DNA of 41,317 nt from Octopus bimaculoides (lineage: Eukaryota), in contig NC_068989.1 of NCBI RefSeq assembly GCF_001194135.2, positions 93,530,305-93,571,621 of the forward strand, given 5' to 3'. A program made the translations under genes and the position numbers. Under the pieces are notes generated by a model. That model saw only the letters and a program-made list of their open reading frames with translations. It was not told the DNA's origin and did no database searches. The stretch's first letter is position 1; every line of letters begins with the position of its first letter. Positions 10,827-40,385 of this stretch are shown piece by piece.

Positions 10827-10990
10827 TCAGCATTTATTACCAATATTAATCACATAATATGTGAGTGTTTGCTTAGTTAGTAGTTTACTAAATAAGAACG
10901 GGATTAAAATGGGTTGAACCGAAAGAATTGGCCCGATTCCAATCATATAGAAGCTGTATTCATAAGTGTTCATATATTCTGAGAAGATTC
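10827..10990 (-). CDS. Gene A exon 5 (TM12 and stop)
   Basis: Acceptor TTCTTCTTAATTACAG; phase 1 gives G-IFSEYMNTYEYSFYMIGIGPILSVQPILIPFLFSK...NKC*, matching the SLC16 GxLxDxxxxYxxxFY terminal pattern; homologous to 33585-33664. Confidence 0.85.
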
Positions 10991-13900
10991 CTGTAATTAA
11001 GAAGAACAAGAAGAACAATATTAAAGACGAGTCATCATATTTGAATATTCAATAAATAAATAAATCAAATTTATTTTTAATCATTAATATCTATAGTAAG
11101 GTGTCAAGCGCCGGACAAAATGCTTAGCAGTATTTCGTCCGTCTTTACATTCTGTGTTCACCTACCACCGAGGTCGATTTTGCCTTTCACGTTTTGGAGA
11201 TCGATAAAACAAGTACCATTTCAGCAATGGGGTCATTCTAATCGACTTACTCTAAACTCGCTGGCCTTGTGTCAAACTTTCAAACTAATATCTATGGTAA
11301 GTACTGTCTCGTGTGTTCGCATTCATAGGGTCCGTGAACCGGTTTCCGTGGTTGGGAAGTGATCGAGAGCACAACATCGGCCCACCCCGCGTGGCGGAAC
11401 GCCAGTCCATCCCAGGGTTACTACACTTACAGTTGAGTTGATTGGAGCAACGTGAAATAAATCGTGTTGTTCAATAACGAAACGCCTGGACCGGGAATCG
11501 AAACCAAGATCTTGCGAGTGACATCTTAACCATCTTAACCACGGACCTTCTTAATAATATCTATATATTTCTAAACAATATATAGATATCGAAGAAATTA
11601 ATGCAATGGATCTTCGTCGGTTTCGGCATTGAGCTGTCAATTAATCAATGAAATTGCTCTTTCGTTGTATTAACGTGAGAAGTGGTTCAATACACCACAG
11701 ACACGTATGCTCTTAAATTATTCTTCCGGCAGATTCTACATGATAATGCATGTGGCAGGGTTGGGCATTTGAATTACAGTTGCAACCTACCTTTGAACGT
11801 GCTTCCGCACAGTGTCTAGCAATCCGGTTTCACCCATGATTATTGATCGACTCAAGGCTTTAGTAAAAAGGAGGCCTCAAATACAAGACAATGAGCTTGG
11901 TTTGAACACGAGATGTTGTGATTATAAAGCAAACTTCTAAGCTATACTATGAAATAGCTGAAAGTTAAAAAAAAAAAAAGTGAAAAAGATTTCTCACACA
12001 CTACAGCGTGGGCTAGAACACGAGATCTCGTGATTATAAAACAAACTTCGAAGCCATCAAGTTATACTAAGCAAGAAGGAAACGATTTGCGGGCTTCGTT
12101 CACCGCTGATGACGCCGCTTCTACTTGCTCGTTGCTCGGCTGAGGCTGAGGCTGCACTGTTAGAGGGCCGACGAGTGCGAGGGGGCCCGGCCGCGGCTTA
12201 CGAAACCGGCTGGATGGCGCCGGAAAGGCGAGGAGGAGGCGACGACGACGGCGATGTTGGCCGGCCGACGCCAGGAAGGAAGACGAGAGAGATATTGATG
12301 TTCGTGGAGCCGCAAAGCGTGCAGCACCGTCGGCCTAGCGCACTGTATTCGGGCGGACGCAGGCTGGGTGAAAACTGAAAGAATCGCTTGTAGAATGTAT
12401 ATTCTCACAAATTGTTGGAGTTAAGTCATAAGAATTGTGAAGATATGACAGGTTCATAGGTTTTTACACTGATTAACGAAAAATGTTCACAGAAACGATA
12501 TTTATTATATTTCATTCAATTCAAATGTTTCTCTATAAAATACTATAATTGCTGGCTGGGGATTACTTCCGCAACATTCATACATGAATGAGACATTCTG
12601 GCACAGCCGTTTTGGCAACACCTATATGGCATCGCTAATTCGACGATGTCTTATTTGACAACCAGCGTTTAAACGTTTCCATTGTTCTCTCCCTCTCTGT
12701 CTGTCTGTCAGTCTGTCATTTAAGAAACACCGACTTATACCAGGGACTACCAAAATTAACATTGAAGATACAGCATAGAAGGATGAGGCTAGCTGAACAC
12801 TACATCAGACGACATACCGATGAAATTGCGAACGAGCTAGTGCTCTGTCAACCAAGGGAAGGAAGAACCAGGAGAAGAATGAGGAAGACGACCTATATCG
12901 ATAACTTGCAGGAGGATTCTGGTATGGAAGGGGTCCAGGAACTGAGGACAATTATGGAAGATCGAGATGAGGAAAACGTGTGGAAACAATCTTGGGGCGT
13001 CCTATGGGACGACCTAGATGAGATGAGAGATGCTTCTCCCTCTCTCTCCCTTTTTGCCCGTATACATTTCTTTCTGCACACGCGTGTTAACATCCAGTAT
13101 AGAAAAGTGCTGCTGCACAAACATGCTGAATATCTAGTCGGCCAGACCAGATCGTCAACGACAACAAAACAGCTGCGACCGAAGTCTCATTTTTTCCTTA
13201 ACACATACTTCATATGTATATATGTTATCACAACTGTTGTAACTTAGTATATTCTGAAATATGGATAAGAAAAATGTTATATATTTACCTATCAGATATC
13301 CAACTGCTAAAATGCCAATTCCAATTGCTGTTTCTTCGAATCCCATACTTATCGAAAAGTATTCAATTTCGAAGTAATCCATAACAGTTACAAGATTTGT
13401 AGAGAATATGAGGCCACTTGTGAACATCACAGCAAATGTAAGCGAAGTCAAATACATTGCAGTGGACAACGAAGGATAAACACAGATCAGTAATCCGCTC
13501 ATGGTGGCTGCCGTACTAAATATAATCCTGCTTGGGACAATGTTTTTATGTATCAACCAACTACTGACGAAACAAGCCAAGATATACCCAAACGATCCCA
13601 CTGAAAATATACGTGCACTTTCTGCTTGACTCAGCCCCTGTTGTACGCAATAATCCGGTAAGATAGATACTGCTGTTATAACACCTCCGTACGTTATAAC
13701 AATTGCGAAAAGAAATACAAGGAAATTGAAATTTGTTAAAACTGTTATAAGTCTTTCAGAAAATTTCAAATCAGATTTTTCTTCCGTTTGAACCTTTTCA
13801 CTTTGAACATCAATCTCCTCATCCTCAGATTTTATAGAATTTATAGCTGTCTCTTCGATACCCAGAGAATCTTCTTTGTCAGGCTGTGTATTATTTATAA

Positions 13901-16900
13901 CAAATGGTTCGTTGTCATATTTTAAGGCCTTAATAGCAGACCCATTTAAATTGATGTCTTCGTTATGATTCAAAGATGTATTATTCTCTTCAAATATTTC
14001 CAGTTTGTTCGATATCGTTTCATCATGAACGTCACCAATATTTTGAAATTGTTCCTCAGAATCGTTTGAATGCGACTTATATAAATCTTTCTGCACGTTA
14101 CTTTCGCTTACTGCCAAATTTTCTCTCCTCGTGTTTTTATACATATCCGTAGAATACATGAGAGCACATGGCAGAGTGTGTATGAAAGTAGCGGCCAGGA
14201 GAAGAAGACTTCCGCGCCAGAACATGAGTTCAATGAAGTAATTGGTAAGGACTGGGAAAATTATAAATCCAAGAGATTTTCCCACCGTAGCAAATGCAAT
14301 AAATTTACGACTATCTTCGCCGAAATAAGCTGCTAATCCATTATTTGCTGATACATTAAGAGAAGCACAACCAATACCTGTTACAAGAGAAGATATAAGA
14401 ACAAAGAATAATTAAGAAGTAGTTACTAAGTTAATCAAGGACATTTCTGAATAATTAACGAAGAGATTGTTGTTATTTTATTATTATCTTTTATTTCTCT
14501 GATTAGTGGCCTTACATCCATATTGAAAATTAGCTCATAACATTTACACTAGAATTAAACTTTGCTTCGTATTCGGTTTGCAAGATTCTAAATGTGGATT
14601 CGTGTGTTGAAATAAATCTTGAGTCTTGGTAGAGTCATTACGCCAATAATAACAACTCACGCACTGGTCCAATATCATTTATTTATTGTTAGTGCATTGG
14701 TTAAGTATTTTACCAGTTAACTAATCGATTGATTGTTTAATGTGCTGGTTAAACAATCAATCGGTTGTTTGTTAATGAAATTTCTTTCGTCGCTGTTCGC
14801 AACAACCTTCTCAGCGACTTACGTCTCTGTCGAAAGTCTGCTAAGAGATATCGAACCAGTGCGTGTGTTATTAACATTGACATACTAAATCCAACCAAGA
14901 CACTGGAATTAAAGTTCATAAAAATAGTACCATATAATTATAAAGAGACTGCAAACCTTCATTCAGTTTCATTTTGAAAGTATAATACTTTCTTCACGTC
15001 ATCAATAGTTTTGGTAAATATATAAACATTACTTCATGTAACTTTTAACATAAACATCACACTTTTAATCAATGAGTAAGCAGCTCTATTTTCTCATCTT
15101 TTAGTACCACTGGAAGATGGTAATCATGATTGTCTAGGACGCCTGCGAGAGTGGTGGTAGGGATGAAGTAAGATAACCTCATACCGGACACGTGGATTGG
15201 ACTCTTGCAAACAAAGTGAACCCTACCAAAGCCTCCAATGTACCACAAGGTGATCAGCGCCGGATTAAGGTCTAGAGAAGGCCTAAGTACTTAAAAGATT
15301 TTGCTGCCCTTNNNNNNNNNNGTGAAATTTAAAATACAAAAAATAATAAACCATAAAACAAGTTTTTACACTTCAAAATGAAACAGAACAAGTAGTGAGA
15401 TGGAAAACAAGTCTTATTTTTTATACTAACACTTTATTTGCATTTGAAACGTTTTCGCCTACTTATTTTTTGTAATTGCAAAGAATATGTTCACATGCAT
15501 AAAAGTTCGTCTTACCTAAAATGTCTGCTTCCATATTTAGTAGAGATAAATCATCACAAATATTATGTTAGCAAGTTTAAAGTGATTTCTATTATACCGT
15601 AAACTATTTACCATTTCTATAGTGACATCCCTTGATGATCTAACCATGTATTTATCTTGATTAATGGTTAATCTAGTTCAGATGGTGATGTTAAACTAGT
15701 GAACGAAATAAGCATATTACTCAATTAAGTCAGTGCGATTTGAACTTGAACTCCAAAGAGCTGAAATAAATACCACAAGAGATTCTGTCAGACACTCTTA
15801 CACTTCTACCTCTCCACTATTCTGGACAAAGTACTTTTGGAGATGTTGACCTCATCAATGACTTCAGCTTGGTCAAATTATAAAGACTTCTTTTCTCTCC
15901 GAAGCCCATAAAAATACATAAAATGAAGATTTATGATCTGCGCTCTTTCGATAATGGAGTTTCAGAAAACGATAAGTGACATTTGAATTCATTATCATAT
16001 CTCTGATTAACGTTGAACGTTTTACGATATGCATAGAAAGCAAGAAAACACACCTACCTACATGCATATGTATGTCTATGTATATATATATATACAGATG
16101 CGTGCAACATTTGTTCGTGAATGTTTTACTAAATTACTGGGCAACACAAACCTGGTAAAAGACTGAAACATCCCAATAAAACATAAATACTCGAAGAAAA
16201 CGATGGAGCGCCAATAGAAAGTGTAAGACATAAGCTTCCCACAATGCCAGTGGTTCTTACGCCAAATTTAGTGAGAAAAATTCCAATCACGAAACCTAAG
16301 AACGAAAAAAGAAGAGAATAGTCTTTTAATGATTTACTGGGATTCAGTTCATTAATGAGTTAAAATATGGTTAATGACCTTTTAATTACCAATAACTAAA
16401 AAACAACGGATCTATGATGGAATTTAGGACAGAATTTCTGACAATATTTAATTGTTCAATGAACGTAGTTGGTACAAAAACTCGAAGGATTCGGTACAAT
16501 TTTTGTCAACTCATTTCCACTCGAAAGCTTTGGGTCAACTCAGCCTTATAAATGTATGTATGAGTGTGTGTACGTATGTATGTTTGTATGTATGTATGTA
16601 TGTATGTATGTATGTATGTATGTATGTATGTATGTATGAGTGTGTGTATATATGTATGCATGCATGTATGTATGAACGTATGTATGTATGTATGTATGTA
16701 TGTATGTATGTATGTATGCATTATGTTAATGTGTGTGCATGTATGTATGTACGTATGTATGTGTGCATATACGTGATGTTCTTCTTTCAGTTTCCGGCTG
16801 TCAAAGCATTTGTTAGCCCGGTGTTATTTTAGAAGTCAATCTCCCAAGTGTGCCACGCAGTGCCATAGAACCTGGAGCCATGTGGTTGCATTGCGAGCTT

Positions 16901-17670
16901 CTTACCACACAGCCACTCCTGCGCCTAGATTGCTACATTATCTTTTTTTCATATCTGTGTATTTTAAGAAGCTCAGCTTGAGCCGTTCTCCAAGTTGTCT
17001 GGATGCAACAATTTTGAATGAGTCAAAGTTCTCAATCTGTTTGATGTTTGTCAGTTACTCTCTAAAGTAATTATCCCAAAAATGTAAGGAATTCATATAA
17101 TTGTACATGTTTTGAATATTAAACAAACTGGAATATGANNNNNNNNNNNNNNNNNNNNNNNNNNNNNNNNNNNNNNNNNNNNNNNNNNNNNNNNNNNNNN
17201 NNNNNNNNNNNNNNNNNNNGGTAAAAATACTATCAAAAGTACAAGATCGTGTAAGTCCGGAAAAACCTTCTTGAATTCTACGAGGTAAATTGGTAGAACA
17301 GCAGTGAAACCAAATACTAATATGTTGGTAACAAAAACGGAAAAGACTACTAAAGCAGCGACGATGGTCTCTGGCACGGATCGTTTCTTGGTTCTACTGG
17401 AAAGACAAAGAATGAAATCTTTATTTAGTATAATATGGAAACTGTCAGAGATACAGTATAGAGTAGCGGGATGAGAGAGGGGTCAGAGTAAAAGCATTTA
17501 CTTGTTTTAGTCATGCTAGACTGCCACCTTGAAGAATCGATCCCACTAGTTTTCCTTCTTTTTAGGTTTGGTACTTTTTCTATCGGTCACTTTTATCAAA
17601 CCGCTAAATTATGAGTGTGTAAGCGCAACAACAACGGTCTTCAAGCGGTGGTGGGGACAAACAGAGATCA

Positions 17671-17749
<79 letters not shown>

Positions 17750-20736
17750 ATACACACACACACACACATACACACACACACACATATATACTGCGGGCTT
17801 CTTTCGGTTTCCATTTACCACGTTCATTCACAAGACTTTGGTCGACCCGAGGCTATATTAATTTATACCTGCGTATGGTGTCATGCGGTGGGACTGAACT
17901 TGGAACAATTTGGTTGGAAACAAAAGGCTTATCCCACAGCCACACCTGCGCCTGTATTGAGGGTGTAGAAATAATTATTTTCGGTATATTTTCTGGTTGT
18001 ATGCATTCTGTGTTCAAATCCAGCTCAGATGAACTCGGTCAATAAGTAAGTGTACCAATCAAGTACTGGAATCGATATAATCGACTAACCCCCACCCTCG
18101 CCCCTTAAGTTTGCTGCCATTGAACTTAAACTAGAAACTGTGCCTAGAGTTGAAATCTTACCGAGCTTAACTTTGCCTCTGTTTTCTAAGATTAGCTCAG
18201 TCCGAGTTTCAAATCTATCCTGGTTTAATTTATTTTCTTTATTGTTAGGTAATCGGTTATTGAGTTTATTAAAACAGTATAGATTGATTATTTTGGAGAT
18301 AATTAATTGTAATAAGAACATATTTTTGTAGGAAGAAAAGAAAGGAAAAACATTAAAACTATAAAATATCAAATTATCACGAATCAAACTTATTAATACT
18401 TCACCAAGGAGAAAAAATGGTGGGGTGAATTAAGTAACAAATAATAGAGGTGGAGATAGTGACAATTTGTGCACCTTAGACCAAATGATGCGTTCAGCCA
18501 CACCTCGTAGGCATGATTGCAATGGCATTGCCACGTAAAATGGCCAGCGACACTCACTGCAACAACCATCCCACCACATAGGGCTCGTTTCACATTTTAT
18601 ATACTTGAGCTCTGATATTCACATGCTCGTGAGGTCATCTTTGCCTTGTAATCAATCGAGTTGCGAAAGGCAAAATACATTCATTTGATGTAAATTGTGT
18701 TTTTGCATAATTTACATCGTGCAACTTCCGAAAACAGCTTTCAAACCATTAACATCTCGATTATGTTATTCATGAAATTTACCGTTATCTTATCAACGAG
18801 GTATTTATAGCCATTTGTGACTATAAACGAGATTTTGGCTGCTTCGGTATCATATTACTACCTTCCACTTAATGCCAATCACCACGGCTTTTATAATCCT
18901 AGACATTGTCTGTACGTAGGCTTTATGTAACATCTCCACACTCGAAACAGATTCATACCCTCCTCGTTTATTTGTTAATTGTATGTCATGACGTCGTACC
19001 TCACTTGTATTATTAATGTAAACCCCTAAAATGTTGTGCCTAAAGTAGAAAGAATGAAGGTGGAGAATTGGCAAAATCATTAGANNNNNNNNNNNNNNNN
19101 NNNNNNNNNNNNNNNNNNNNNNNNNNNNNNNNNNNNNNNNNNNNNNNNNNNNNNNNNNNNNNNNNNNNNNNNNNNNNNNNNNNNNNNNNNNNNNNNNNNN
19201 NNNNNNNNNNNNNNNNNNNNNNNNNNNNNNNNNNNNNNNNNNNNNNNNNNNNNNNNNNNNNNNNNNNNNNNNNNNNNNNNNNNNNNNNNNNNNNNNNNNN
19301 NNNNNNNNNNNNNNNNNNNNNNNNNNNNNNNNNNNNNNNNNNNNNNNNNNNNNNNNNNNNNNNNNNNNNNNNNNNNNNNNNNNNNNNNNNNNNNNNNNNN
19401 NNNNNNNNNNNNNNNNNNNNNNNNNNNNNNNNNNNNNNNNNNNNNNNNNNNNNNNNNNNNNNNNNNNNNNNNNNNNNNNNNNNNNNNNNNNNNNNNNNNN
19501 NNNNNNNNNNNNNNNNNNNNNNNNNNNNNNNNNNNNNNNNNNNNNNNNNNNNNNNNNNNNNNNNNNNNNNNNNNNNNNNNNNNNNNNNNNNNNNNNNNNN
19601 NNNNNNNNNNNNNNNNNNNNNNNNNNNNNNNNNNNNNNNNNNNNNNNNNNNNNNNNNNNNNNNNNNNNNNNNNNNNNNNNNNNNNNNNNNNNNNNNNNNN
19701 NNNNNNNNNNNNNNNNNNNNNNNNNNNNNNNNNNNNNNNNNNNNNNNNNNNNNNNNNNNNNNNNNNNNNNNNNNNNNNNNNNNNNNNNNNNNNNNNNNNN
19801 NNNNNNNNNNNNNNNNNNNNNNNNNNNNNNNNNNNNNNNNNNNNNNNNNNNNNNNNNNNNNNNNNNNNNNNNNNNNNNNNNNNNNNNNNNNNNNNNNNNN
19901 NNNNNNNNNNNNNNNNNNNNNNNNNNNNNNNNNNNNNNNNNNNNNNNNNNNNNNNNNNNNNNNNNNNNNNNNNNNNNNNNNAAAGAAGAGAGCAACACGG
20001 AATGGAGAAGTTTAAACAAAAATTGGATAAGTTTAGAACTTAAAATGAAAGGAGAAAGCAATGACGTTTCAGACGTTAGTCTTTCACAGGAAAAAAAACA
20101 ATAAGTAAAGAAGGAACTTGATTCAGAAAAAAATGATGGAAGGGGGAGAGAGAGAAAAGGTGTGATAAGGGGCAGGTGTGAAGGTGGTCGTTTAGGAAAG
20201 GAATTATATTGGTCATGTAACGCCTTATAAATATTGTATTCCGGACATTTTGTTCCTTCCTGTCTCTCTCACTCTTTCGGACGATGAGTTATACTCGAAA
20301 CATCGTTTCCGCTCTTATTTATTCTATCTAAGACTTTCACTAAACGTCAATCTAATGTCCTCACTGTGTACGTCTAATCGACTTTGCTGGGGGTAGAAGT
20401 GGTGTTGGTGGTAGTAGTAGTAGTAGTAGTACAACATCAGCAACAACAACAGCGCCAGCGAGCCAATTCAGGTGTCACCATGCGGTCTCCCTCGCTGCTA
20501 GATACAGCAGCTATATCTATATCAATAACCATTTTTTAAAGACCGAATAGGACATAATTTTAGTGTTTTAGTCCCGTGTATAGCTACAACAACAACAACA
20601 ATAATGACAATAAAAGCAACAAAGACTATGTCAACAACAGCAACAACATAACACCAACAGCAGCAGCAGTAACCCTGACTATTTCTACTATAATAGGTAA
20701 AATACAACCAAACCGTGTGTTTTCTGCGACATCCAT
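10827..20736 (-). CDS. Gene A: SLC16/monocarboxylate transporter-like MFS protein, 5 coding exons, ~539 aa
   Basis: join(20736-20714, 17396-~17197, 16295-16152, 14377-13289, 10990-10827). 23+200+144+1089+164 = 1620 nt, taking the gap-hidden exon 2 end from gene B. All visible junctions are GT-AG with compatible phases. 12-TM MFS layout with a large TM6-7 loop and SLC16-like segments (LAAYFG, WRGSLLL, ILPDYC, SFYMIG). Confidence 0.85.
11098..11290 (+). mobile_element. SINE family 2 in gene A intron 4
   Basis: AAATGCTTAGCAGTATTTCGTCCG...CCGAGGTCGATTTTGCCTTTCA...CTGGCCTTGTGTCAAA; shared with gene B (33116-33235), so it predates the duplication. Confidence 0.8.
11298..11548 (-). mobile_element. 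tRNA-derived SINE, family 3
   Basis: Reverse complement of 32860-33115; tRNA-like head followed by CTGTAAGTG, GATGGACTGGCGTTCC and ACGGAAACCGG blocks. Confidence 0.75.
12735..13030 (+). mobile_element. RTE-clade LINE 3' end in gene A intron 4
   Basis: LYQGLPKLTLKIQHRRMRLAEHYIRRH...GRTRRRMRKTTYIDNLQEDSG...ELRTIMEDR resembles the RTE C-terminus (RRLRLAGH...GRxxxTY); absent from the equivalent introns of B and C. Confidence 0.7.
13289..14377 (-). CDS. Gene A exon 4 (TM4-TM11 and central loop)
   Basis: Acceptor TCTCTTGTAACAG, donor ATAG/GTAAAT, 1089 nt, phase 1/1, open throughout. Confidence 0.93.
16152..16295 (-). CDS. Gene A exon 3 (GFVIGIFLTKFGVRTTGIVGSLCLTLSIGAPSFSSSIYVLLGCFSLLP)
   Basis: Acceptor TTTTTTCGTTCTTAG, donor CAG/GTTTGT, 144 nt; nearly identical to 27357-27500. 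Confidence 0.9.
16553..16770. repeat. (TATG)n tetranucleotide microsatellite
   Basis: Direct read. Confidence 0.9.
16790..16926 (-). mobile_element. SINE family 1, 5' part
   Basis: Minus strand: AGGCGCAGGAGTGGCTGTGTGGTAAGAAGC...CCACATGG...GTGGCACACTTGGG. Confidence 0.75.
17197..17396 (-). CDS. Gene A exon 2 (TM1-TM2); last ~23 nt hidden in N gap
   Basis: Acceptor TCTTTCCAG; RTKKRSVPETIVAALVVFSVFVTNILVFGFTAVLPIYLVEFKKVF...; lower boundary inferred from gene B exon length. Confidence 0.85.
17495..17952 (-). mobile_element. SINE family 1, full length with internal (TG)n
   Basis: Head CGCAGGTGTGGCTGTG, TATAGCCTCGGGTCGACCAAAG, GAAAGAAGCCCG, microsatellite and 3' half. Confidence 0.8.
17985..18137 (+). 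mobile_element. SINE family 2, diverged
   Basis: TTCTGTGTTCAAATCC...GTACTGGAATCGATATAATCGACTAACCCC. Confidence 0.6.
20714..20736 (-). CDS. Gene A exon 1 coding part (MDVAENTR)
   Basis: AGA-ATG-G Kozak context; 23 nt then GTTTGG donor, giving the phase 2 required by exon 2; identical in gene B. Confidence 0.7.
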
Positions 20737-21299
20737 TCTTCAATTCTTCCCTCACGTAATCTTCCAGTTCTTTGTATTCCAGTTCTGTTGAAGTTTATCT
20801 TTACTTCAAACCCAATTATCTGCGCTTTGAAATTTCTCACAATATTTGAATAAAACGAAACGTGACGGTAATATCTGTGAGGAGATTCATGCTTGTGTGT
20901 GTATGTGTGTAGTGGGTGTGTGTGTTTGTGTGTGCGTGCGTGTGTTTGTGTGAATGCATTCATGCAAAGAGGCATGAATGCATATATGTGTCTGTATACA
21001 TACACAGATTTATGAAAGTATACTTACGTATATGTATACATAACTCTCTCTATATATATATATCTATATACAAGCATATACACATGTATATGCATATGTA
21101 TGTATGTGTGTGTGCGTGCATCTGTGAGTGTATGTACGTATGCATTTATGAATGTGTGCATGTGTGTTAATGAGTTGCACAAACTCCTAATTATGTTTCT
21201 GTCCACGAAATTGATAACACGATATCAGCAGAACCGAGAAAAGCAAAGATATTCTGACTTTTGATTCAAAGTAGTTTGAGTTATTCCGAGGAGGAGCTA

Positions 21300-24020: not shown

Positions 24021-24309
24021 NNNNNNNNNNNNNNNNNNNNNNNNNNNNNNNNNNNNNNNNNNNNNNNNNNNNNNNNNNNNNNNNNNNNNNNNNNNNNNNN
24101 NNNNNNNNNNNNNNNNNNNNNNNNNNNNNNNNNNNNNNNNNNNNNNNNNNNNNNNNNGAATGTCTATACAGATATTACCGTCACGTTTTGTTTTATTCAA
24201 ATTTTGTGAGAAATTTCAAAGCGCAGATAATTGGGTTTGAAGTAAAGACAAACTTCAACAGAACTGGAATACAAAGAACTGGAAGATTACGTGAGGGAAG
24301 AATTGAAGA

Positions 24310-24332
24310 ATGGATGTCGCAGAAAACACACG
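24310..24332 (+). CDS. Gene B exon 1 coding part (MDVAENTR)
   Basis: AGAATGG Kozak context; CG/GTTTGG donor; splices in frame to 25968. Confidence 0.7.
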
Positions 24333-24501
24333 GTTTGGTTGTATTTTACCTATTATAGTAGAAATAGTCAGGGTTACTGCTGCTGCTGTTGGTGTTATGT
24401 TGTTGCTGTTGTTGACATAGTCTTTGTTGTTTTTATTGTCGTTATTGTTGTTGTTGTAGATTTACAACATTGTTGTTGCTGATGTTCTTCTAATACTACT
24501 G

Positions 24502-25780: not shown

Positions 25781-26975
25781 TGTGTGTGTATGTATGTATA
25801 TATATGGGTTCGAATCGTTCGAGTAAACTTCTTCAAGGCAGTGCCCCCGGATGGCCGCATAAGTAAATGCTTTTACTCTGACCCCTCTCTCATTCCACTA
25901 CTCTATACTCTATCCCTGACAGTTTCCATATTATACTAAATAAAAACTTGATTCTTTCTCTTTCCAGTAGAACCAAGAAACGATCCGTGCCAGAGACCGT
26001 CGTCGCTGCTTTAGTAGTGTTTTCCGTTTTTGTTACCAACATATTAGTATTTGGTTTCACTGCTGTTCTACCAATTTACCTCGTAGAATTCAAGAAGGTT
26101 TTTTCAGAATTACATGACCTAGTACTTCTGGTGATATTTTTACCTGCCGGTGTATTCGGTATCGTTGGTAAGTATTCGCTATATTCAAAAGAAGCAGCAA
26201 TTGCCTATCTGGTCTTCTTTGAGTTTGTTTTATACCCGTTGGATAAATCCTTTAAGAGTAACTACCAATCATCAATCTAACTGAAAATATTGATTCATTC
26301 AGCTCGGTATACAGCTCGGTATACAGCTCGGTATACAGCTCGAGCTGTGACTCCAAAATTATACATATATCATAGTTAATTTATAGACACTGTTGACATC
26401 TCTTATGGACGTGCCGTTTAAAAAAAACCCCAGTAAATATCAGAGGGAGACAAAACTTTGTGATTTTAACATAAAATATGTTATCTCAGAAGAAATACGA
26501 CAGTAACTTGTTTTTTGACAGTGTATATACATTAAGTGTGATAAATAGTCGACTATTTTGATTTAATTCTGTCTCTATTACGCATGCCTGATACAAAAAA
26601 ATGCACTAGATAATATTTTTGATACAAATTTATATACGGATCGTATGAAAATACTAATTTCCTTTTCTTGTCTGAAAAGTTTCCTAATACCAGTTGCAAT
26701 GACTGGAATAATAGAATACACTTGTCGTAATTGTTAGGAGTGAAAAACAACAAATTTCCGAAAAGTTAGACTACTTATGTGTAAGGTTCTATAACATGGA
26801 CCATACATACATACATACATACATACATACATACATACAAACAAACAAAAACACCCTGTTGTTGATGCTGAAATTCCAAAGTCTTCGATCCAGGTTAGAA
26901 ACCAGTTGTTTCTCTATTGGCAAGAAATCTGAAATAAACTGAAGAATGACTGACATAAATAGACAGTTAGTTAGT

Positions 26976-27037
<62 letters not shown>

Positions 27038-30000
27038 CATACATACATACATACATACATACATACATACATACACACACACATTCATGCATACTTATAT
27101 TTATAAGATCGAGTTGACCATTTGGGTGAGTAGAAACGAATAGACGAAAACTATACGGAACTCGTCGAATGTTTCTCGCTCTGATTCACTTTGTATCACG
27201 TTCCTTAAACAGTTAAAAAATTATCAGATATTCCAAACTAGATCCATTGTTAATAATTTATGGATAATTAAAATATCATTAACAGTTGTAAACTCATTAA
27301 TAAATTGAATCCCAGTAAATCATTAAAAAACTATTCTCTCCTTTTTTCGTTCAAAGGTTTCATGACTGGAATTTTTCTCTCTAAATTTGGCGTAAGAACC
27401 ACCGGCATTGTGGGAAGCCTTTGTCTTACCCTTTCTATTGGCGCTCCATCGTTCTCTTCGAGTATTTATGTTTTATTGGGATGTTTCAGTCTTTTACCAG
27501 GTTTGTATTCCTCTGCATTTTATTATTAGGCTGTCCGGAAATTTCTGAACATTTTTAAGTGAAATTATTTAACGCTTCATTGAACACACCTGAAACATAG
27601 CACAGTGAAAATATTGGCGTTGATTGAAGTGGTAATGCATCTCGTCTTTGTTCCGGACTGAAAACAGATTTATCTTTCATTCCCGTTATTCTTTATTTAC
27701 TTTTGAAATGGATAATCAAAAATTTCGTATTCGCGTTGTAATATTCACGTTGTAATGCTTTCCTTTTTCAAAAAAGGAGAAAATGCTGCAAAGACTTACA
27801 AAAAAACATTTGTGAAGTTTCTGGTGATGTTGCTGTGGCTGAATCAACTGTTCGAAGGTTGTTTGCAAAATTTAGAGCTGGAGAGTTTATCTTGGAAGAT
27901 GACAGTCACAGTGGAAGACCTTCCACATTGGATGAAGATGCTTTGAAGGCAAAAATCGAAGAAAACTCAAATATCACAACAAGAGAACTTACAGAGGAGT
28001 TGAGCGTTTCTACAAGTACGGCTCATGAACACCTTATGAAGCTAAGATTAATTTCTCGCTCTAATGCATTGGTCCCTCATAAACTCTCAGGGAAGAATTG
28101 CTTGGACCGGTATTCTGTTTGTGATATGTTTTTGAAAAGGGATGAAAGCATGCCTTTTTTGAAACAATTTGTGACTAGAAATGAAGAATGGATTGTGTAT
28201 GAAAACGTAGTGCGAAAAATAACCTGGAGTCTGCGTAAGGGTATCCCAAAACATCAACTAAAGACCAATATCCATGCCTAAAAAGTTACTCTTTGTGTTT
28301 GGTGGGATCATAATGGCATTATTCATTATGAGCTTCTCCTACAAAACCAGACCATTAATTCTGATGGCTAATTTGAACCAAAAAAGATCAAACACTTGAG
28401 GTCGGTGATTGCCAACAGGAAAGGAGTAGTGTTCCAACAAAACAATGCCCGACCACTTGTGTCTTTGTCCACCTGAAAAAATTGCATGAGCTTGGCTAGG
28501 GTCTCTGACCTCGTCCCCCATATTCTCCTGATATTGCGTCATGCGACTGTCATTTGCTTTTGCCTCTCCAGAACTCATTGCAAGGAAAAATATTTAACAA
28601 TTCAGATGGCGTCAGAAAGAATCTAGATAATTTTTTTTCTTCGAAACATGAGTACACCTTTAGGAATAGGGATAGGTTTAATAGTACTAGTCTGAGTGAA
28701 TTAATTTGGAAACTGAATAGTAAGAAATCATACGCCATAAATTGGAAAATATTTAGTCATGTTAGATCGTACAAAATTAATGATGCTAGATGCACCTTGT
28801 GTGTAGATGAACTATATCAGAAGAAATTACTTAATGAAAGACGTAACAAGATAAGCACACGCTTAAGAAAACAACGGAGGTCACTATAGAAATAGTAAAT
28901 GGTTTACTGCATAGCAGAAATCACTTCAAACTTGCTAAGGAATATTGAGGATGATTTATCTCTACTAAATATTGAAGCAGATGTCTTACGTAAGATTAAT
29001 TTTTCTGGCTCAGATCAAAGAGTGCAATTAAAAAAATAAAGCCGAATACATTTCAAACGTAAATAAAGAGTTAGTGTTAAAAATAAGCATTATTTTCTAT
29101 CTTAAACTTTCTTTTGTTTCATTTGAAACCTAAAAATTTATTTTATGGTTTATTATTGTTTATATTTCAAATTTCTTATATATATATATATATATATATT
29201 TGGGCAGCAAAATCTCATAAGTACTTAGGCCTTCTGTAGATCTTAATCCGGCGCTGATCACCTTGTGGTACATTGGATGCTTTGGTAGGGTTCACTTTGT
29301 TTGCAAGAATCCAATTCACGAGTCCGGTATGAGGTTATNNNNNNNNNNNNNNNNNNNNNNNNNNNNNNNNNNNNNNNNNNTTTCAAACGTAAATAAAGAG
29401 TTAGTGTTAAAAATAAGCATTATTTTCTATCTTAAACTTTCTTTTGTTTCATTTGAAACCTAAAAATTTATTTTATGGTTTATTATTGTTTATATTTCAA
29501 ATTTCTTATATATATATATATATATATATTTGGGCAGCAAAATCTCATAAGTACTTAGGCCTTCTGTAGATCTTAATCCGGCGCTGATCACCTTGTGGTA
29601 CATTGGATGCTTTGGTAGGGTTCACTTTGTTTGCAAGAATCCAATTCACGAGTCCGGTATGAGGTTATGTTGCTTCATCCCTACCACCACTCTCGTAGGC
29701 ATCCTAGACAATCAGGATTACCATCTTCCAATGGTACTAAAATATGAGAAAATAGAGCTACTTACTCATTGATTGAAAATGTGATGTTTATGTTAAAAGT
29801 AATATGAAGTAATGTTTGAATAATTACCAAAACTATTGATGACGTGAAGAAAGTGTTATGCTTTCAAAATGAAACTGAATGAAAGTTTGCAGACTCTTTA
29901 ANNNNNNNNNNCTAACAATAAAGAAATGATATTGAACCAGTGCATGTGTTGTTATTATTGGGGTAATGACTCTACCAAGACACAAAATTTATTTCAACAA

Positions 30001-33000
30001 ACGAATTCACAACAAAAATCTTACAAATGGAATACGAAACGATGTTTAATTCCAGGGTAAATGTTATAAACTTTAACTTCAATATAGATGCAAGGCTACT
30101 CATCACAAAAATTACATTAAGATTATTCAGAAGTCTTGGATTAACTTAGTAATTACTTCTTAATTTCTGTTCGTTTTTATATCTTCTGTAACAGGAATTG
30201 GTTGTTCTGCTATCAGTCTATCAGCAAATGCTGGATTAGCAGCTTATTTCGGTGAAGACAGTCGAAAATTTATTGCTTTTAGTACGGTCGGAAAAGCTCT
30301 TGGATATATGATTTTTCCAATCCTTACCAATTACTTCATCGAACTCATGTTCTGGCGCGGAAGTCTTCTTCTCCTGGCTGCTACTTTCATACACATTCTG
30401 CCATGTGCTCTCATGTATTCTACGGATATGTATAAAAACACGGGGAGAGAAAATTTGGCAGTAAGCGAAAGTAACGTGCAGAAAGATTTATATATGTCGC
30501 ATTCAAACGTTTCTGAGGAACAATTTCAAAATATTGGTTACGCTGAGGATGAAACGATATCGAACAAACTGGAAATATCTGAGGAGGATAACACTTCCTT
30601 GAATCATAACGAAGACATCAATTTAAATGAAAAATATATTCGTGAGGCCTTAAAATATGATAACGAACCATTTGTTATAAATAATACACAACCTGACAAA
30701 GAACATTGTTTGGGTATCGAAGATACAACTATAAATTCTATAAAATCTGAAGACGAGGAGATTGATGCTCAAAGTGACAAGGATAAAACAGAAGGAAAAT
30801 CTGATTCGAAATCTTCTGCAAGACTTATAACAATTTTAACAAATTTCAACTTCCTTTTATTCCTTTTTGCACTTTTTATAGTTTACGGTTGTGTTGTGAC
30901 ATCATCGTCTATCTTACCTGATTACTGCGTAAAACAAGGGCTGAGTCAAGCAGAAAGTGCACTTATATTTTCAGTGGGATCGTTGGGGTATGTCTTGGCT
31001 TGTTTTGTCAGTAGTTGGTTCATACATAAAAACATTCTCCCAAGCAGGATTATATTTAGTATTTCAGCCATCATAAGCGGATTACTGATCTGTGTTTATC
31101 CTTCGTTGTCCACTGCAACCTATTTGACTTTGCTAACATTTATTATAATGTTCACAACTGGACTTATGTTCGCTGTATATTTTGTATCTGTTATGGATTA
31201 CCTCGACATCGAATGTTTTTCGATTGCTATGGGCTTTTCAGAAACAGCAGTTGGAATTGGTATTTTAGCTGGTGGATATCTTATAGGTAAATATATAACA
31301 TTTTTGATACCTATGCTTATTAATATGATCGCTACAAATATTTTTCATTCTCTAATTTTGAATTTTTCTTATGTTACCAACAATGTTTCAATTCTGTTTC
31401 CCAACACCTGCTGATTATGTTGGTCATCAATTAGGAGCATTAATCATAAAACATATAAAGATAGGTGACATCTTTATTCTTAATTCTTAATTTCTGGATG
31501 TGCTTCAATGTATAGATGTAACAGTTGAGTTTACATATATACACATCAAATATGTATTAATGAAGAATGAGACGATCGGTCGCAGCTGTTTGGTCGTTAC
31601 TCATCTGAAGTACCGACATGTAGAGAGGAAAAAAATGAGAGATCACAATTTATCAACTGAGCATGATTGACGTAAATACTTTCCTTCTCCTCATACCATA
31701 CAAATACAGATAAACATACTCACATAAACAGTGACAGAGAAAGAGAGAGAAAGAAGGAGAGGGAGGGAGAGAGAGGGAACGAACGATAGTAACGTTAAAA
31801 CGCTAGCTGTCAAAAAGTCAGCGTCGAATCAGCGACGCCAAATAGGCAGTGCGAAAACGGCTCTGCCAAAACGTAACATTTCCGTATGAATGTTGCAGAA
31901 GTAATCCCCGGCCAGTAATTATCATATTGTATAGAGAAACATTTAAATGGAATGAAATGTAAAAAATATCGTTTCTGTAGGTAAGTATTTTCGTTAATCA
32001 ATGTATATAAATGTAAGAACATATAAATCTATCATGTCTTCACACTTCTAATGACTTAACTCCAACAATTTGTGAGAATATACATTCTACAAGCGATTCT
32101 TTCAGTTTCTATGGAGATAAGATTTTTTTCCATTCTTGCTTAGTATAACTGGATGGCTTCGAAGTTTGTTTTATAATCACGAGATCTCGTGTTCTAGCCC
32201 ACACTGTAGTGTGTGAGAAATATTTTTCCTTTTTTTTTAAAGCTTCAGCTATTTCATAGTATAGAGGGAGAATTTACAAAAAGAAAGCAATAGACGAAGA
32301 CAGGTGGTGTAGACAACAAGCTGATGTGTTAGTTTAACGCTCGGGAAGTGAAAAATTCTTTAACGTTTCGAGCCTACGCTCTTCCACAGAAAGTAACACA
32401 GAAAGAAACAAGGAGAGAAACTAAAGAATGTGTAGTGGCTAGCAATCTATCATGGTATCTATTCATAGTATAGCTTAGAAGTTTGCTTTATAATCATAGC
32501 ATCTCGGATTCAAACAAAACCCATTGTTTTGTATTTGAGGCCTTCTTTTTTATAAAGCCTCGAGTCGACCAACTGTCGTGGATGGAATTGTATTGATGAA
32601 GCTGTGCAGAAACCGGTTGAAAATTGTAATGAAAATGCCCATCTTTGTCTCATAGAGTATCCTGTTGAATTTTCCTAAGGAATACTTTAAGAGCACATGT
32701 GTCTGTGGTTTATTCAACTACTTCACACGTTAATACAATAAAAGAGCAGCTTCATTGATTGAGCAATTGACAGCTCATTGCCGAAACCGACGAAGATCCA
32801 TTGCATTCAATCTTTCGATATCTATATATTGTTAAACAATGTATAGATATTATTAAGAAGGTCCGTGGCCTAATGGTTAAGGTGTGGCACTCACGATCGC
32901 AAAATCTTGGATTCGATTCTCCGTCCGGACGGTGAGTTATTGAACAGCACAATTTATTTCAAGTTGCTCTCATCAACTCACCTGTAAATGCAATAACCAT

Positions 33001-33664
33001 GGGATGGACTATCGTTCCGTCAGGTGGGGTGGGCAGATGTTGTGCTCTCGATCACTTCTCAACCACGGAAACCGGTTCACGGGCCCTATGAATGCGAACA
33101 CACGAGACAGTACTTACCATAGATATCAGTTTGAAAGTTTGACACAAGACCAGCGAGTTTAGAGTAAGTCGATGAGATCGACCCCATTGCTGATATAGTA
33201 CTTATTTTATCAATCTCCAAAAGGTGAAAGGCAAANNNNNNNNNNNNNNNNNNNNNNNNNNNNNNNNNNNNNNNNNNNNNNNNNNNNNNNNNNNNNNNNN
33301 NNNNNNNNNNNNNNNNNNNNNNNNNNNNNNNNNNNNNNNNNNNNNNNNNNNNNNNNNNNNNNNNNNNNNNNNNNNNNNNNNNNNNNNNNNNNNNNNNNNN
33401 NNNNNNNNNNNNNNNNNNNNNNNNNNNNNNNNNNNNNNNNNNNNNNNNNNNNNNNNNNNNNNNNNNNNNNNNNNNNNNNNNNNNNNNNNNNNNNNNNNNN
33501 NNNNNNNNNNNNNNNNNNNNNNNNNNNNNNNNNNNNNNNNNNNNNNNNNNNNNNNNNNNNNNNNNNNNNNNNNNNNNNNNNNNNTAATTCCATTCTTATT
33601 TAGCAAACTACTAACTAAGCATACACTCACATATTCTGTGAATAATGTCGATAATAAATGCTGA
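24310..33664 (+). CDS. Gene B: SLC16/monocarboxylate transporter-like MFS protein, 5 coding exons, ~540 aa
   Basis: join(24310-24332, 25968-26167, 27357-27500, 30195-31286, ~33501-33664). Visible junctions are GT-AG with phases 2,1,1,1; no stops or frameshifts in visible exons; exon 5 acceptor is in a gap. Confidence 0.88.
25968..26167 (+). CDS. Gene B exon 2 (TM1-TM2)
   Basis: Acceptor TTTCTCTTTCCAG, donor G/GTAAGT, 200 nt. Confidence 0.92.
27357..27500 (+). CDS. Gene B exon 3 (TM3 to start of TM4)
   Basis: Acceptor TTTTTTCGTTCAAAG, donor CAG/GTTTGT, 144 nt. Confidence 0.92.
27526..28646 (+). mobile_element. Mariner (D,D34D-type) element with pseudogenised transposase, 3' end lost
   Basis: TA-flanked left end TTAGGCTGTCCGGAA; ATG near 27708; ESTVRRLFAKFRAGEFILEDDSHSGRP, LVPHKL, TRNEEW (cf. 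TGDEKW), LCVWWD, QQNNARP, YSPDIASCD; frameshifts and stops. Confidence 0.9.
28647..28845 (+). mobile_element. Penelope-like element, C-terminal fragment of GIY-YIG region
   Basis: HEYTFRN...NSTSLSELIWKL...INWKI...CTLCVDE...LLNER matches the PLE pattern H...F..NSTxLSxxIWxLK...WxI...CxLCxxE...LLNxR. Confidence 0.65.
30195..31286 (+). CDS. Gene B exon 4 (TM4-TM11 and central loop)
   Basis: Acceptor TCTTCTGTAACAG, donor ATAG/GTAAAT, 1092 nt, open. Confidence 0.93.
32860..33115 (+). mobile_element. tRNA-derived SINE, family 3
   Basis: Box A TGGCCTAATGG, box B-like GATTCGATTCTCC, body with CTGTAAATG, GATGGACT and ACGGAAACCGG, recalling conserved central domains of eumetazoan SINE superfamilies (exact domain not assigned). 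Confidence 0.75.
33116..33235 (-). mobile_element. SINE family 2 (runs into gap)
   Basis: Counterpart of 11098-11290. Confidence 0.7.
33585..33664 (+). CDS. Gene B exon 5, visible 3' part (IPFLFSKLLTKHTLTYSVNNVDNKC*)
   Basis: Homologous to gene A exon 5; 5' part and acceptor lie in gap 33236-33584. Confidence 0.8.
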
Positions 33665-36070: not shown

Positions 36071-38858
36071 AACACCCGCCACTACACCTTATAAATAACT
36101 TACTATATTTGTCACATACCTGTGATAAATATAAGAAACAGAAATAGATAAAATATAAATAATAAATAAATAAATCCATATTAAGGCCATGGATATATAC
36201 AACATACGAGGCGAATCCACACAGACACACAAACACACACACAAGAAATTACACCAACGTCCACAGCAATGTCAACACGAATAACAATGACAGCAGCAGC
36301 GGCGGTGACAACGATGACAGTAACAACTACTACTACGATAGTAACACCGTGGGCGAATACACAAACAGAGAGATACAGGAACTATACCAAATTTTCGGGT
36401 TTTAGGACAGCAGCACTAAACACACACACACACACACACACAAACACGGACGCAAACGCATGCACGCATATGGAGTCACATCTTAGAAGAACAGAATGGA
36501 GCAACTGGAACAAGAGCACACAAGATAACGGAAAGTGTCGCTGAAGAGGTCACAGATGTGTGACGAAATATTTCCGGGCAATGGACATGAGTTAGAATTA
36601 AATAAAACATATACGAACAGTTATAAACGAGTGAAGGNNNNNNNNNNNNNNNNNNNNNNNNNNNNNNNNNNNNNNNNNNNNNNNNNNNNNNNNNNNNNNN
36701 NNNNNNNNNNNNNNNNNNNNNNNNNNNNNNNNNNNNNNNNNNNNNNNNNNNNNNNNNNNNNNNNNNNNNNNNNNNNNNNNNNNNNNNNNNNNNNNNNNNN
36801 NNNNNNNNNNNNNNNNNNNNNNNNNNNNNNNNNNNNNNNNNNNNNNNNNNNNNNNNNNNNNNNNNNNNNNNNNNNNNNNNNNNNNNNNNNNNNNNNNNNN
36901 NNNNNNNNNNNNNNNNNNNNNNNNNNNNNNNNNNNNNNNNNNNNNNNNNNNNNNNNNNNNNNNNNNNNNNNNNNNNNNNNNNNNNNNNNNNNNNNNNNNN
37001 NNNNNNNNNNNNNNNNNNNNNNNNNNNNNNNNNNNNNNNNNNNNNNNNNNNNNNNNNNNNNNNNNNNNNNNNNNNNNNNNNNNNNNNNNNNNNNNNNNNN
37101 NNNNNNNNNNNNNNNNNNNNNNNNNNNNNNNNNNNNNNNNNNNNNNNNNNNNNNNNNNNNNNNNNNNNNNNNNNNNNNNNNNNNNNNNNNNNNNNNNNNN
37201 NNNNNNNNNNNNNNNNNNNNNNNNNNTTTTATCTACTCCGCGTTTCGAACGTTGGGACAAGACGCGACTTCGTTAAAACAGTCGTTCCCGCAAAGCAAAT
37301 TAAATAGAATTTGGGATTTTCGGAGGGTTAAAGTGGTAACAAAAACAGGACAGTAAGAACAGAACAGTAAAAACAAATGGTAAGGGCTGTTATTCCATAA
37401 TGAGGTAAGGTGCTGAACGCCAGAGAAAGGAGCTTTGACAGGAGACAGACAAAAATGTGTCTTGTGTCTTGTAAAGCAAGACGAAGAACGATAGCTGCTG
37501 GTCGTGTGTGAGCAACGAGAGAGTCAAGGAGGAAGAGTGAAGGAGAGAGGGAGGGAAAGAGAACGGTGAAGAGGGAGGAGAAGAAAAACAGAAAGAACGA
37601 TGAATAATAGTGGAATGATAGATGGAGACTAGAGATAGTTGTAGAGTGCGCATCAGAATTATTATGATAAATCTTACTTAGAAATGGATACGTGGAGTTC
37701 GGTCATATAATAATATAAATCTATACATATAAATTGACACGGGCAATTCTTTCCTGTCTTGGGATTCACGGTGAAACGGCTGGGTGGAATTGCGTGAAAA
37801 TTTACAAAGATGTGTAGAATCAACCGGTGGTGATACGGAGTTTTGTATTTTTTCATAGCTCCCATGGTTACCGAGATAATCTACTATAATAATATTCTTG
37901 TGTTTATGAGCGAGAAAGGAAGGCAGTTATCCCCTGTTTTATCTACTGTTTTGTTCCAACGTTCGAAATGCGGAGTAAATAAAATAGGGGACAACTGATG
38001 AAGGGATAGTTCTTTATGTTGCCTGTATCGTTTCTCTATTTGTTGTTCGAAAAAGTTCGTTTTCCATGTTTTTGTTTTTTTTTATGTTCTCGTTTTTGAT
38101 TTTGCTCAGGTTTTTTTTTATGTGCTGTACCCATATATGCATGTATATATACATATATATGTAGGTATGTACATATATGTATGTTTATATGCATATACAT
38201 ACATATAGATTATAAATACGCTAATGGGGTGAAAGTATTTGACTAGTTGAATAGATTTCAAATAAGGACATTCGGCAGATACTTTCAGATTTATATAAAC
38301 GAAATAACTCAACCTAGTTTAAACCAACAGTCAGAATATCTCTACGTTTCTCGGTTCTGCTGATATCGTGTTATCAANNNNNNNNNNNNNNNNNNNNNNN
38401 NNNNNNNNNNNNNNNNNNNNNNNNNNNNNNNNNNNNNNNNNNNNNNNNNNNNNNNNNNNNNNNNNNNNNNNNNNNNNTACCAAAACTATTGATGGCGTGA
38501 AGAAAGTATTATAGTTTCAAAATGAAACTGAATGAAGGTTTACAGACTGTTTAAACGGCGCTTTATAGTTATATGGTGTTACTGTGATAAACTTTAATTC
38601 CATTGTCTTGGGTGGGTTCGGTATGTCAAAGTTAATAACACACGCACCGGTTCGATATCTCTTAGCAGACCTAGGACAGAAAAATAAGTCGCCAAGAAAC
38701 TTGTTGCGAGCAGTGACGAAAGAAATTTCACTAACAAACAATCGATTGATTGTTTAACCAACACATTATAGAAACGATTGATTAGTTAGTTGGTTAAATA
38801 CTTAACCAATACACTAACAATAAAAAAATGATATCGAACCAGTGCTGTTATTATTGGC

Positions 38859-39281: not shown

Positions 39282-40385
39282 GTATTGGTTGTGCTTCTCT
39301 TAATGTATCAGCAAATAATGGATTAGCAGCTTATTTCGGCGAAGATAGTCGTAAATTTATTGCATTTGCTACGGTCGGAAAATCTCTTGGATATATAATT
39401 TTCCCAGTCCTTACCAATTACTTCATCGAACTCATGTTCTGGCGCGGAAGTCTTCTTCTCCTGGCTGCTACTTTCATACACACTCTGCCATGTGCTCTCA
39501 TGTATTCTACGGATATGTATAAAAACACGAGGAGAGAAAATTTGGCAGTAAGTGAAAGTAACGTGCAGAACGATTTGTATAAGTCACATTCAAACGATTC
39601 TGAGGAACAAATTCAAAATATTGGTTACGTTGAGGATGAAACGATATCGAACAAACTGGAAATATCTGAGGAGGATAACACTTCCTTGAATCATAACGAA
39701 GACATCAATTTAAATGAAAAATATATTCGTGAGGCTGTTATTAAGGCCTTAAAATATGATAACGAACCATTTGTTATAAATAATACACAACCTGACAAAG
39801 AACATTGTTTGGGTATCGAAGAGACAGCTATAAATTCTATAAAATCTGAAGACGAGGAGGTTGATGCTCAAAGTGACAAGGTGCAAAGAGAAGAAAAATC
39901 TGATTCGAAATTTTCTGCAAAAATTATTACAATTTTAACAAATTTCAATTACCTTTTATTCCTTTTCGCTGTTATTATAACGTACGGCAGTTGTATAACA
40001 ACAGTATCTATCTTACCGGATTATTGCGTACAACAAGGACTGAGTCAAACAGAAAGTGCCCGTATATTTTCAGTAGGGGCGTTCGGTTATGTCTTGGCTT
40101 GTTTCTTCAGTAGTTGGTTGATACATAAAAACATTGTCCCAAGCAGGATTATATTTAGTACTGCAGCCAGCATGAGCGGATTACTGATCTGTATTTATCC
40201 TTCGTTGTCCACTGCTATATATTTGACTTTGCTAACATTTGCTATGATGTTCACAAATGGCCTCATATTCTCTACGTATGTAGTAACTATTATGGATTAC
40301 TTCGAAATCGGATACTTTTCCATAAGTATGGGATTTGGAGAAACAGCAATTGGAACTGGTATTTTAACTATTGGATATCTGATAG
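39282..40385 (+). CDS. Gene C exon 4 (SLC16-like, third paralog); other exons not visible
   Basis: Acceptor TCTCTTGTAACAG, donor ATAG/GTAAAT, 1104 nt, open, phase 1/1 as in A and B. Confidence 0.9.

Follow-up and report, generated by a model that had tools for sequence, protein, structure and literature searches.

Transport by the monocarboxylate transporter (MCT) MCT1, of the SLC16 family, uses a lysine in the first transmembrane helix (K38, TM1) and an aspartate/arginine pair in the eighth (D309 and R313, TM8). In simulations of MCT1, lactate forms hydrogen bonds directly with K38, S154 and R313 (PMC13265630), and the D309N and R313N variants were inactive at every pH tested (PMC9982067). 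The TM8 arginine, which binds the substrate carboxylate, is conserved in most SLC16 members (PMC6573034), and in MCT8 and MCT10 (R371 and R343, respectively) it is held by a network of a TM10 aspartate and a TM7 tyrosine (PMC12078798). Natural departures include the Asn that the creatine transporter MCT12 has at R313 and the Ser of MCT8 at D309 (PMC9982067; PMC12078798); our literature search found no statement of which human SLC16 members other than MCT12 have lost the TM8 arginine. In molluscs, MCT gene families have grown by tandem duplication (PMC11939762). A 41,317-nucleotide stretch of the Octopus bimaculoides genome (NC_068989.1, positions 93,530,305 to 93,571,621; hereafter the window) carries three paralogous genes of the major facilitator superfamily (MFS), designated A, B and C, which an earlier note on the sequence described as relatives of these transporters that lack the MCT1 residues.

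From sequence comparison and a structural model, we consider it fairly probable that A, B and C encode functional, divergent SLC16-like carriers in which the pocket has been rewired in the Octopus clade, with a substrate that is probably unlike that of the paralogues that retain Asp/Arg in TM8. What is new here is the derived state of a Tyr/Cys pair in TM8, a unique lysine in TM5, and the evidence that these genes are under constraint.

Fold and pocket residues

Pfam recognized only MFS_1 in the predicted proteins, and a profile search against the PDB retrieved MCT1 (1.4e-11), MCT2 (1e-9) and SfMCT, a bacterial SLC16 homologue (0.009). An AlphaFold2 (AF2) model of P0001, the O. sinensis ortholog of gene B, had a predicted local distance difference test (pLDDT) score of 81 and a predicted template modeling (pTM) score of 0.78, with 12 transmembrane helices and a large, disordered TM6-TM7 loop (residues 222-316). 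Foldseek comparison of this model with the PDB returned SLC16 proteins at ranks 1-21 (MCT1, MCT8, SfMCT and MCT2; target-normalised TM-scores 0.76-0.87) and MCT10 at ranks 24 and 28, and the NCBI names of relatives include 'MCT5-like' and 'MCT9-like'. The broad features of SLC16 are present, namely a 12-helix MFS fold, a large loop on the intracellular side between TM6 and TM7, and SLC16 proteins as nearest relatives. The loop itself (B 30413-30832, and the corresponding stretches of A and C) spans ~135 residues, is acidic and rich in Asn and Ser, and has predicted disorder (pLDDT <50); blocks within it, such as ALKYDNEPFVINNTQP and INSIKSED, were unchanged in every paralogue and species compared, and may be regulatory or interaction motifs.

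SLC16 proteins carry two classical signatures, [D/E]G[G/S][W/F][G/A]W before TM1 and YFxK[RK][RL]xLAx[GA]xAxAG across TM4, the following loop and TM5. The octopus proteins have PETVVAA in place of the N-terminal DGGWGW, of which other homologs have the D in 37/57 cases and the last W in 44/57, and which is absent across the entire cephalopod clade described below. At the second signature they read YFGEDSRKFIAFSTVGKALG, in which only YF and the final Gly are retained and EDS stands in place of the basic KRR. Because both signatures and the TM8 arginine are missing, sequence and model together place these proteins as divergent SLC16-like carriers, not as SLC16 members in the strict sense.

Residue equivalences with human MCT1 were established by three alignments: phmmer pairwise alignment with PDB MCT1 and MCT2, the profile search against the PDB, and a MAFFT alignment of 67 sequences with MCT1 fragments added, with MCT1 numbering checked on the PDB sequence. 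All three gave identical outcomes, K38 to Ala, D309 to Tyr and R313 to Cys, reproducing the manual reading in the earlier note; the alanine is seen in A and B (TM1 is not visible in C) and the Tyr/Cys pair in A, B and C. The motifs that note quoted (FTAVL, the TM8 motifs, GYLIG and VPETVVAAL; Table 1) are all in place, the last as VPETIVAAL in A, and its observation that DGGWGW and the TM11 GPP are absent was borne out, the MCT1 residues P406/P407 being replaced by Gly/Tyr and GPP by GGY. A TM11 glutamate that it called retained is indeed present in all three copies, in the context SETA, EETA or GETA, but it lies three residues before the E398 equivalent and aligns with MCT1 T395, while E398 itself corresponds to Val or Ile. 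Family paralogues have D...R in exactly the Tyr/Cys columns of TM8, with no gaps, which validates the alignment. At the position of the TM8 arginine, A, B, C and all O. sinensis and O. vulgaris relatives have Cys, and 45/57 non-cephalopod sequences of the alignment have Arg. With 88-90% DNA identity among them, A, B and C are recent paralogues and so do not amount to three independent observations; independent support comes from the invariance of four positions (TM5 Lys, TM8 Tyr, TM8 Cys and TM11 Glu) in all the detected O. sinensis and O. vulgaris relatives that cover them.

When 1.84 billion representatives were searched exhaustively with HMMER, two tiers of matches emerged, a few strong ones at 30-40% identity and, after a sharp drop, generic 'MCT9/12/13/14-like' proteins of molluscs and other invertebrates. 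The named members of the first tier were all cephalopod (Argonauta hians, O. sinensis 'MCT9-like' and Sepia pharaonis) and the remainder were transcript assemblies; in A. hians three genes with accession numbers close together (GAB1603494/95/98) lie on one contig. The cephalopod clade had a bootstrap value of 100 in a neighbor-joining tree, and the family that includes A, B and C is, as judged from these searches, coleoid-cephalopod-specific and tandemly expanded. The K38 equivalent is missing throughout the clade. Three subclades (S. pharaonis, A. hians and O. sinensis 'MCT9-like') have Glu in TM5, Asp...Arg in TM8 and Glu in TM11 (E-D-R-E); a TM5 Gly accompanies Tyr...Arg in P0011, Asn...Arg in P0015, and Glu...His in P0012 and P0019; and only the window clade has Lys in TM5 with Tyr...Cys in TM8 and Glu in TM11 (K-Y-C-E). 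Since the Sepia, Argonauta and O. sinensis paralogues keep Asp/Arg, the Tyr/Cys pair represents, on the sequences compared, a derived loss; the family otherwise has Asp/Arg at these TM8 positions.

Among the 150 best-scoring representative homologs, K38 was kept in ~17% and D309 in ~27%; their absence is the common state among SLC16-like proteins, so by this comparison loss of the MCT1 triad is ordinary for this branch and only modestly surprising. R313 was kept in about two-thirds to four-fifths of homologs. Its most frequent substitute was Cys, which recurs in mollusc 'MCT14-like' and 'MCT13-like' proteins; a count of 13 obtained with a narrow hidden Markov model (HMM) was inflated by the misplacement of D...R sequences by one or two columns, and inspection reduced it to ~6-7. 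The unusual feature is the TM5 lysine, which in these alignments is unique to the window clade among the homologs surveyed: Lys occupied the MCT1 S154 position in 0/~154 aligned domains outside that clade. This residue (K155 in P0001) lies mid-helix, beside a helix break in the AF2 model, and together with the TM11 glutamate (E470) it provides the only charges in the TM cores.

Selective constraint, mechanism and alternatives

The visible exons of the three genes are free of stops and frameshifts, and splice sites are canonical. The ratio of nonsynonymous to synonymous substitution rates (dN/dS) between gene C exon 3 and its O. sinensis ortholog P0002 (L002) was 0.28 overall, 0.11 in TM4-6, 0.19 in TM7-11 and 0.50 in the loop; between paralogues it was 0.32-0.60. 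K155, Y386, C390 and E470 are invariant in all window copies and in those of the P0001-P0007 models that cover them, in three Octopus species. These patterns indicate purifying selection, together with a degree of relaxation or divergence among the paralogues. A comparison of the exon 3 loop in B (30413-30832) and C (39500-39931) gave a dS of 0.05, vs 0.13-0.30 in the flanking TM regions, and a dN/dS of ~1, a pattern consistent with a gene-conversion tract.

Because the triad is absent, and D309N and R313N inactivate MCT1, an MCT1-type lactate/H+ cycle is unlikely. The earlier note had concluded that the proteins are not lactate/H+ symporters. It is reasonable, from the residues, to say that they are not symporters of the MCT1 type, and the canonical MCT1-4 triad is indeed lacking; its exclusion of charged pocket residues was unwarranted, however, and the charged cavity residues that it named as potential counter-evidence were found in part, as a Lys at the S154 position and the TM11 Glu, with no equivalents of K38, D309 or R313. 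The octopus proteins would most likely act as alternating-access carriers without the MCT1-4 mechanism, in which a proton relay from Lys38 through substrate to Asp309 is followed by breakage of the Asp/Arg salt bridge. In the Octopus clade the ancestral TM8 Asp/Arg, the proton acceptor and carboxylate clamp of MCT1, gave way to Tyr/Cys, in a change coordinated with replacement of the TM5 Glu of the Asp/Arg paralogues by Lys. That TM5 Glu probably forms a pair, across the domain interface, with the TM8 Arg of the same paralogues. If the positive charge shifted to TM5 in the window clade and two negative charges were lost, the net charge of the pocket, and hence the substrate, would be expected to change; the substrate may be neutral, zwitterionic or still an anion, bound in that case by the Lys. 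Should the TM5 lysine truly take over substrate binding, the family would offer a natural experiment in re-specification of an SLC16 pocket by charge moves between facing helices. The four gene B codons encoding the TM5 Lys, TM8 Tyr, TM8 Cys and TM11 Glu (Table 1) are targets for mutagenesis.

Several observations weigh against functional carriers with a rewired pocket. Paralogue dN/dS reached 0.5-0.6 for A-B and B-C, which is rather high for a transporter and could reflect relaxed constraint, and among the matches of the protein database search the Tyr/Cys clade was represented by genome predictions alone, with no proteins from transcript assemblies. Exposure of K155, Y386, C390 and E470 to the cavity follows from MCT1 homology and mid-helix positions, not from measured distances. 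The nodes that join subclades within the cephalopod clade are weak (bootstrap 12-61), so the case for Asp/Arg as the ancestral state depends chiefly on the occurrence of this pair in three subclades and in outgroups.

The pocket Lys and the mid-membrane TM11 Glu leave room for anionic or proton-coupled substrates. In one alternative the proteins are still transporters of monocarboxylates or other organic anions, possibly proton-coupled, the positive charge that binds the anion having shifted from TM1/TM8 to the TM5 Lys and the TM11 Glu being the residue that is protonated. The lysine sits at the position of S154, a direct lactate contact in MCT1, the glutamate is retained in all copies, and the K38M and K38A variants of MCT1 still transport at acidic pH, which implies some plasticity of the site (PMC9982067). 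Against this, R313N and D309N abolish MCT1 function, and E470 is common to the Asp/Arg paralogues and is therefore not a compensating change. TM5 and TM11 moreover lie on opposite sides of the cavity in MFS architecture. We regard this alternative as possible but unlikely.

A stronger version of pocket rewiring holds that the clade evolved a binding site of new architecture in the SLC16 fold, the substrate-contacting positive charge being transplanted from TM8 (Arg to Cys) to the facing TM5 (Glu to Lys), the net charge passing from about -2 in the Asp/Arg paralogues to about 0 and the substrate class being switched; from the sequences we find it doubtful. The candidate substrates on this version, a zwitterionic cephalopod metabolite (octopine or another guanidino or opine compound) or an ommochrome precursor, are tentative to the same degree when taken together. 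Cephalopods make octopine instead of lactate as a glycolytic end product, and the family could point to carriers for cephalopod-specific metabolites; a narrow literature search found nothing on octopine transporters or on carriers for such metabolites.

It is improbable that the Tyr/Cys copies are superfluous products of duplication on the way to losing function, with their residue losses as a sign of decay. The family is highly duplicated, and the A-B and B-C ratios and the want of transcript-assembly support among protein-search matches would fit decay, but the visible exons are intact, ortholog dN/dS is low, particularly in the TM regions, and the four pocket residues have stayed invariant across three species. 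That the losses are an alignment artefact, with the canonical Lys, Asp and Arg present but shifted, is extremely improbable: identity to MCT1 is only ~16%, and for a few distant homologs the narrow HMM shifted D...R by one or two columns, but three alignment methods concur, close paralogues (30-37% identity) place D...R in the same ungapped columns, and Asp, Arg and Lys are absent from TM1 and from the TM8 core.

Layout of the locus

Gene models were built from a six-frame scan, self-BLAST, tblastn with full-length Octopus proteins and splice-site reading. The window is microsatellite-rich; A (-) and B (+) are an inverted duplicate pair arranged head to head, C (+) lies in tandem with B, and a fourth paralogue is found ~13 kb past the window end. 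Gene A corresponds to XP_014784979.1 (P0007). No other subfamily members were detected by tblastn of P0008-P0014 against the window, L001 (the chromosome-level assembly GCA_001194135.2, CM046609.1) or L002. A search for the last exon in the conserved DNA just 3' of exon 3 gave repeats only, and tblastn with full-length orthologs located it; the last exon of C is past the window end. Exons 0-2 of C, which would encode the N-terminus and TM1, were not found upstream of 39282 within the window and are probably hidden in the gaps 36638-37226 or 38378-38477.

Table 1. Coordinates in the window of gene models, motifs, pocket codons and shared intron blocks
Feature	Position	Strand	Remark
Gene A, whole	10827..20736	-	tblastn and splice sites; product XP_014784979.1
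Gene A, exon 0	20736-20714	-	
Gene A, exon 1	from 17396	-	interrupted by gap 17139-17219
Gene A, exon 2	16295-16152	-	
Gene A, exon 3	14377-13289	-	
Gene A, last exon	10990-10827	-	
Gene B, exon 0	24310..24332	+	start codon, MDVAENTR, donor GT; tblastn with P0004/P0001 and splice-site reading
Gene B, exon 1	25968..26167	+	N-terminus VPETVVAAL, TM1 with FTAVL, start of TM2
Gene B, exon 2	27357..27500	+	TM2 to part of TM4
Gene B, intron 2	27501..30194	+	holds both noted gaps, 288-bp duplicate, transposase remnant
Gene B, exon 3	30195..31286	+	TM4-TM11 and long acidic loop
Gene B, last exon	33585..33664	+	3' part with stop codon; ~84 nt of 5' part (TM12) in gap 33236-33584
Gene C, exon 3	39282..40385	+	sole visible exon of C
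FTAVL (TM1), A	17294-17308	-	
FTAVL (TM1), B	26056-26070	+	
TM8 motif SVGSFGYILACF, A	13569-13604	-	
TM8 motif SVGSLGYVLACF, B	30971-31006	+	
TM8 motif SVGAFGYVLACF, C	40070-40105	+	
GYLIG (TM11)	A 13287-13301; B 31274-31288; C 40373-40387		
VPETVVAAL, B	25987-26013		
VPETIVAAL, A	17351-17377		
Ala at MCT1 K38, B	26062-26064	+	exon 1
TM5 Lys at MCT1 S154, B	30293-30295	+	exon 3; K155 in P0001
TM8 Tyr at MCT1 D309, B	30989-30991	+	exon 3
TM8 Cys at MCT1 R313, B	31001-31003	+	exon 3
TM11 Glu at MCT1 T395, B	31241-31243	+	exon 3
Shared intron blocks	11179-11957 vs 32459-33235; 12372-12717 vs 31767-32108 and 40891-41240		
Transposable element-like open reading frame fragments in shared intron blocks	11288-11550; 32944-33159		

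The two flagged gaps at 29339-29380 and 29902-29911 both proved to lie in intron 2 of gene B and leave coding sequence untouched. Exons 2 and 3 of B each stand intact on gap-free sequence with canonical AG/GT sites and matching phase 1, and their join, SLLPG|IGC, is that of the O. sinensis ortholog P0001. On either side of the 42-N gap lies one copy of a 288-bp sequence, the two being perfectly identical and in direct orientation (29051-29338 = 29381-29668). The counterpart in the gene A intron (~15173-15449) is single-copy, which marks the duplication as false and a product of assembly. The chromosome-level assembly did not fill these gaps, being 100% identical with the same gaps and false duplication. 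The gaps that affect genes are 17139-17219, in exon 1 of A, and 33236-33584, in the last exon of B. Intron 2 of B also holds a decayed open reading frame of a mariner/Mos1-type transposase (27742-28278, extending to ~28600, + strand; Pfam HTH_48, E 1e-7) with stops downstream, and the corresponding gene A intron is shorter.

Over the first exon and its promoter-proximal flanks, A and B (20589-20878 vs 24168-24457, inverted) are 98% identical, well above the ~88% of their coding exons; this difference suggests that gene conversion has acted on their common upstream region or that the region was recently homogenised. Conserved non-coding or repeat-derived blocks are shared by the introns that lie before the final exon in the three genes. 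Isoform X1 of the NCBI model LOC106878690 (P0004; L001 10001-49130, equivalent to window 24310 to ~63439) begins at exon 0 of gene B, then bypasses the rest of B and C and draws its exons 1-4 from the fourth paralogue, ~30 kb downstream; either the gaps have produced a chimeric annotation or a shared first exon is genuinely used. Past the fourth paralogue and outside the window, a further MFS_1 gene with a 468-residue product lies on the - strand at L001 57599-59130.

Comparison with known transporters

The octopus proteins resemble MCT1-4 (MCT1, PDB 6LZ0/6LYY/7CKR; MCT2, 7BP3) in the 12-helix MFS fold and long TM6-TM7 loop, and these transporters are their best sequence and structure matches; shared details include YF at the end of TM4, WRGS before TM6, LMD/VMD in TM10 and Y-x-Y before TM12. 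They differ in having Ala for K38, Tyr for D309, Cys for R313, Lys for S154 and Val/Ile for E398 at ~16% identity, in lacking DGGWGW, and in the change of GPP to GGY. Like MCT12 and MCT8/MCT10, they have lost parts of the MCT1 triad, and those transporters have non-lactate substrates and no MCT1 proton relay (PMC9982067; PMC12078798), which makes the likeness to non-canonical SLC16 members drawn in the earlier note an apt one. The resemblance to MCT8/MCT10, which carry thyroid hormone and aromatic amino acids, is incomplete: these have Ser at D309 but retain the TM8 Arg and bind the substrate carboxylate with it, whereas the octopus proteins do not have this arginine.

Mollusc 'MCT14-like' and 'MCT13-like' proteins (Mytilus, Saccostrea, Haliotis and Lottia) likewise have no DGGWGW, and P0023, P0025, P0048, P0053, P0077 and P0118 among them have Cys at R313, but they form a separate clade in which Cys, Gln, Ser or Thr takes the place of the Tyr partner and the TM5 Lys is absent. 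The main lesson of the octopus residues is that mollusc "MCT-like" annotations should not be taken to denote lactate transporters. The cephalopod paralogues (Sepia CAE1281407, Argonauta GAB1603494/95/98 and O. sinensis XP_029641413) share 30-37% identity and the long loop with the window clade, have likewise lost DGGWGW, K38 and GPP, and in most members have the TM11 Glu; they differ from it in combining TM5 Glu with Asp/Arg, or TM5 Gly with Tyr/Arg, Asn/Arg or Glu/His, where the window clade has Lys with Tyr/Cys.

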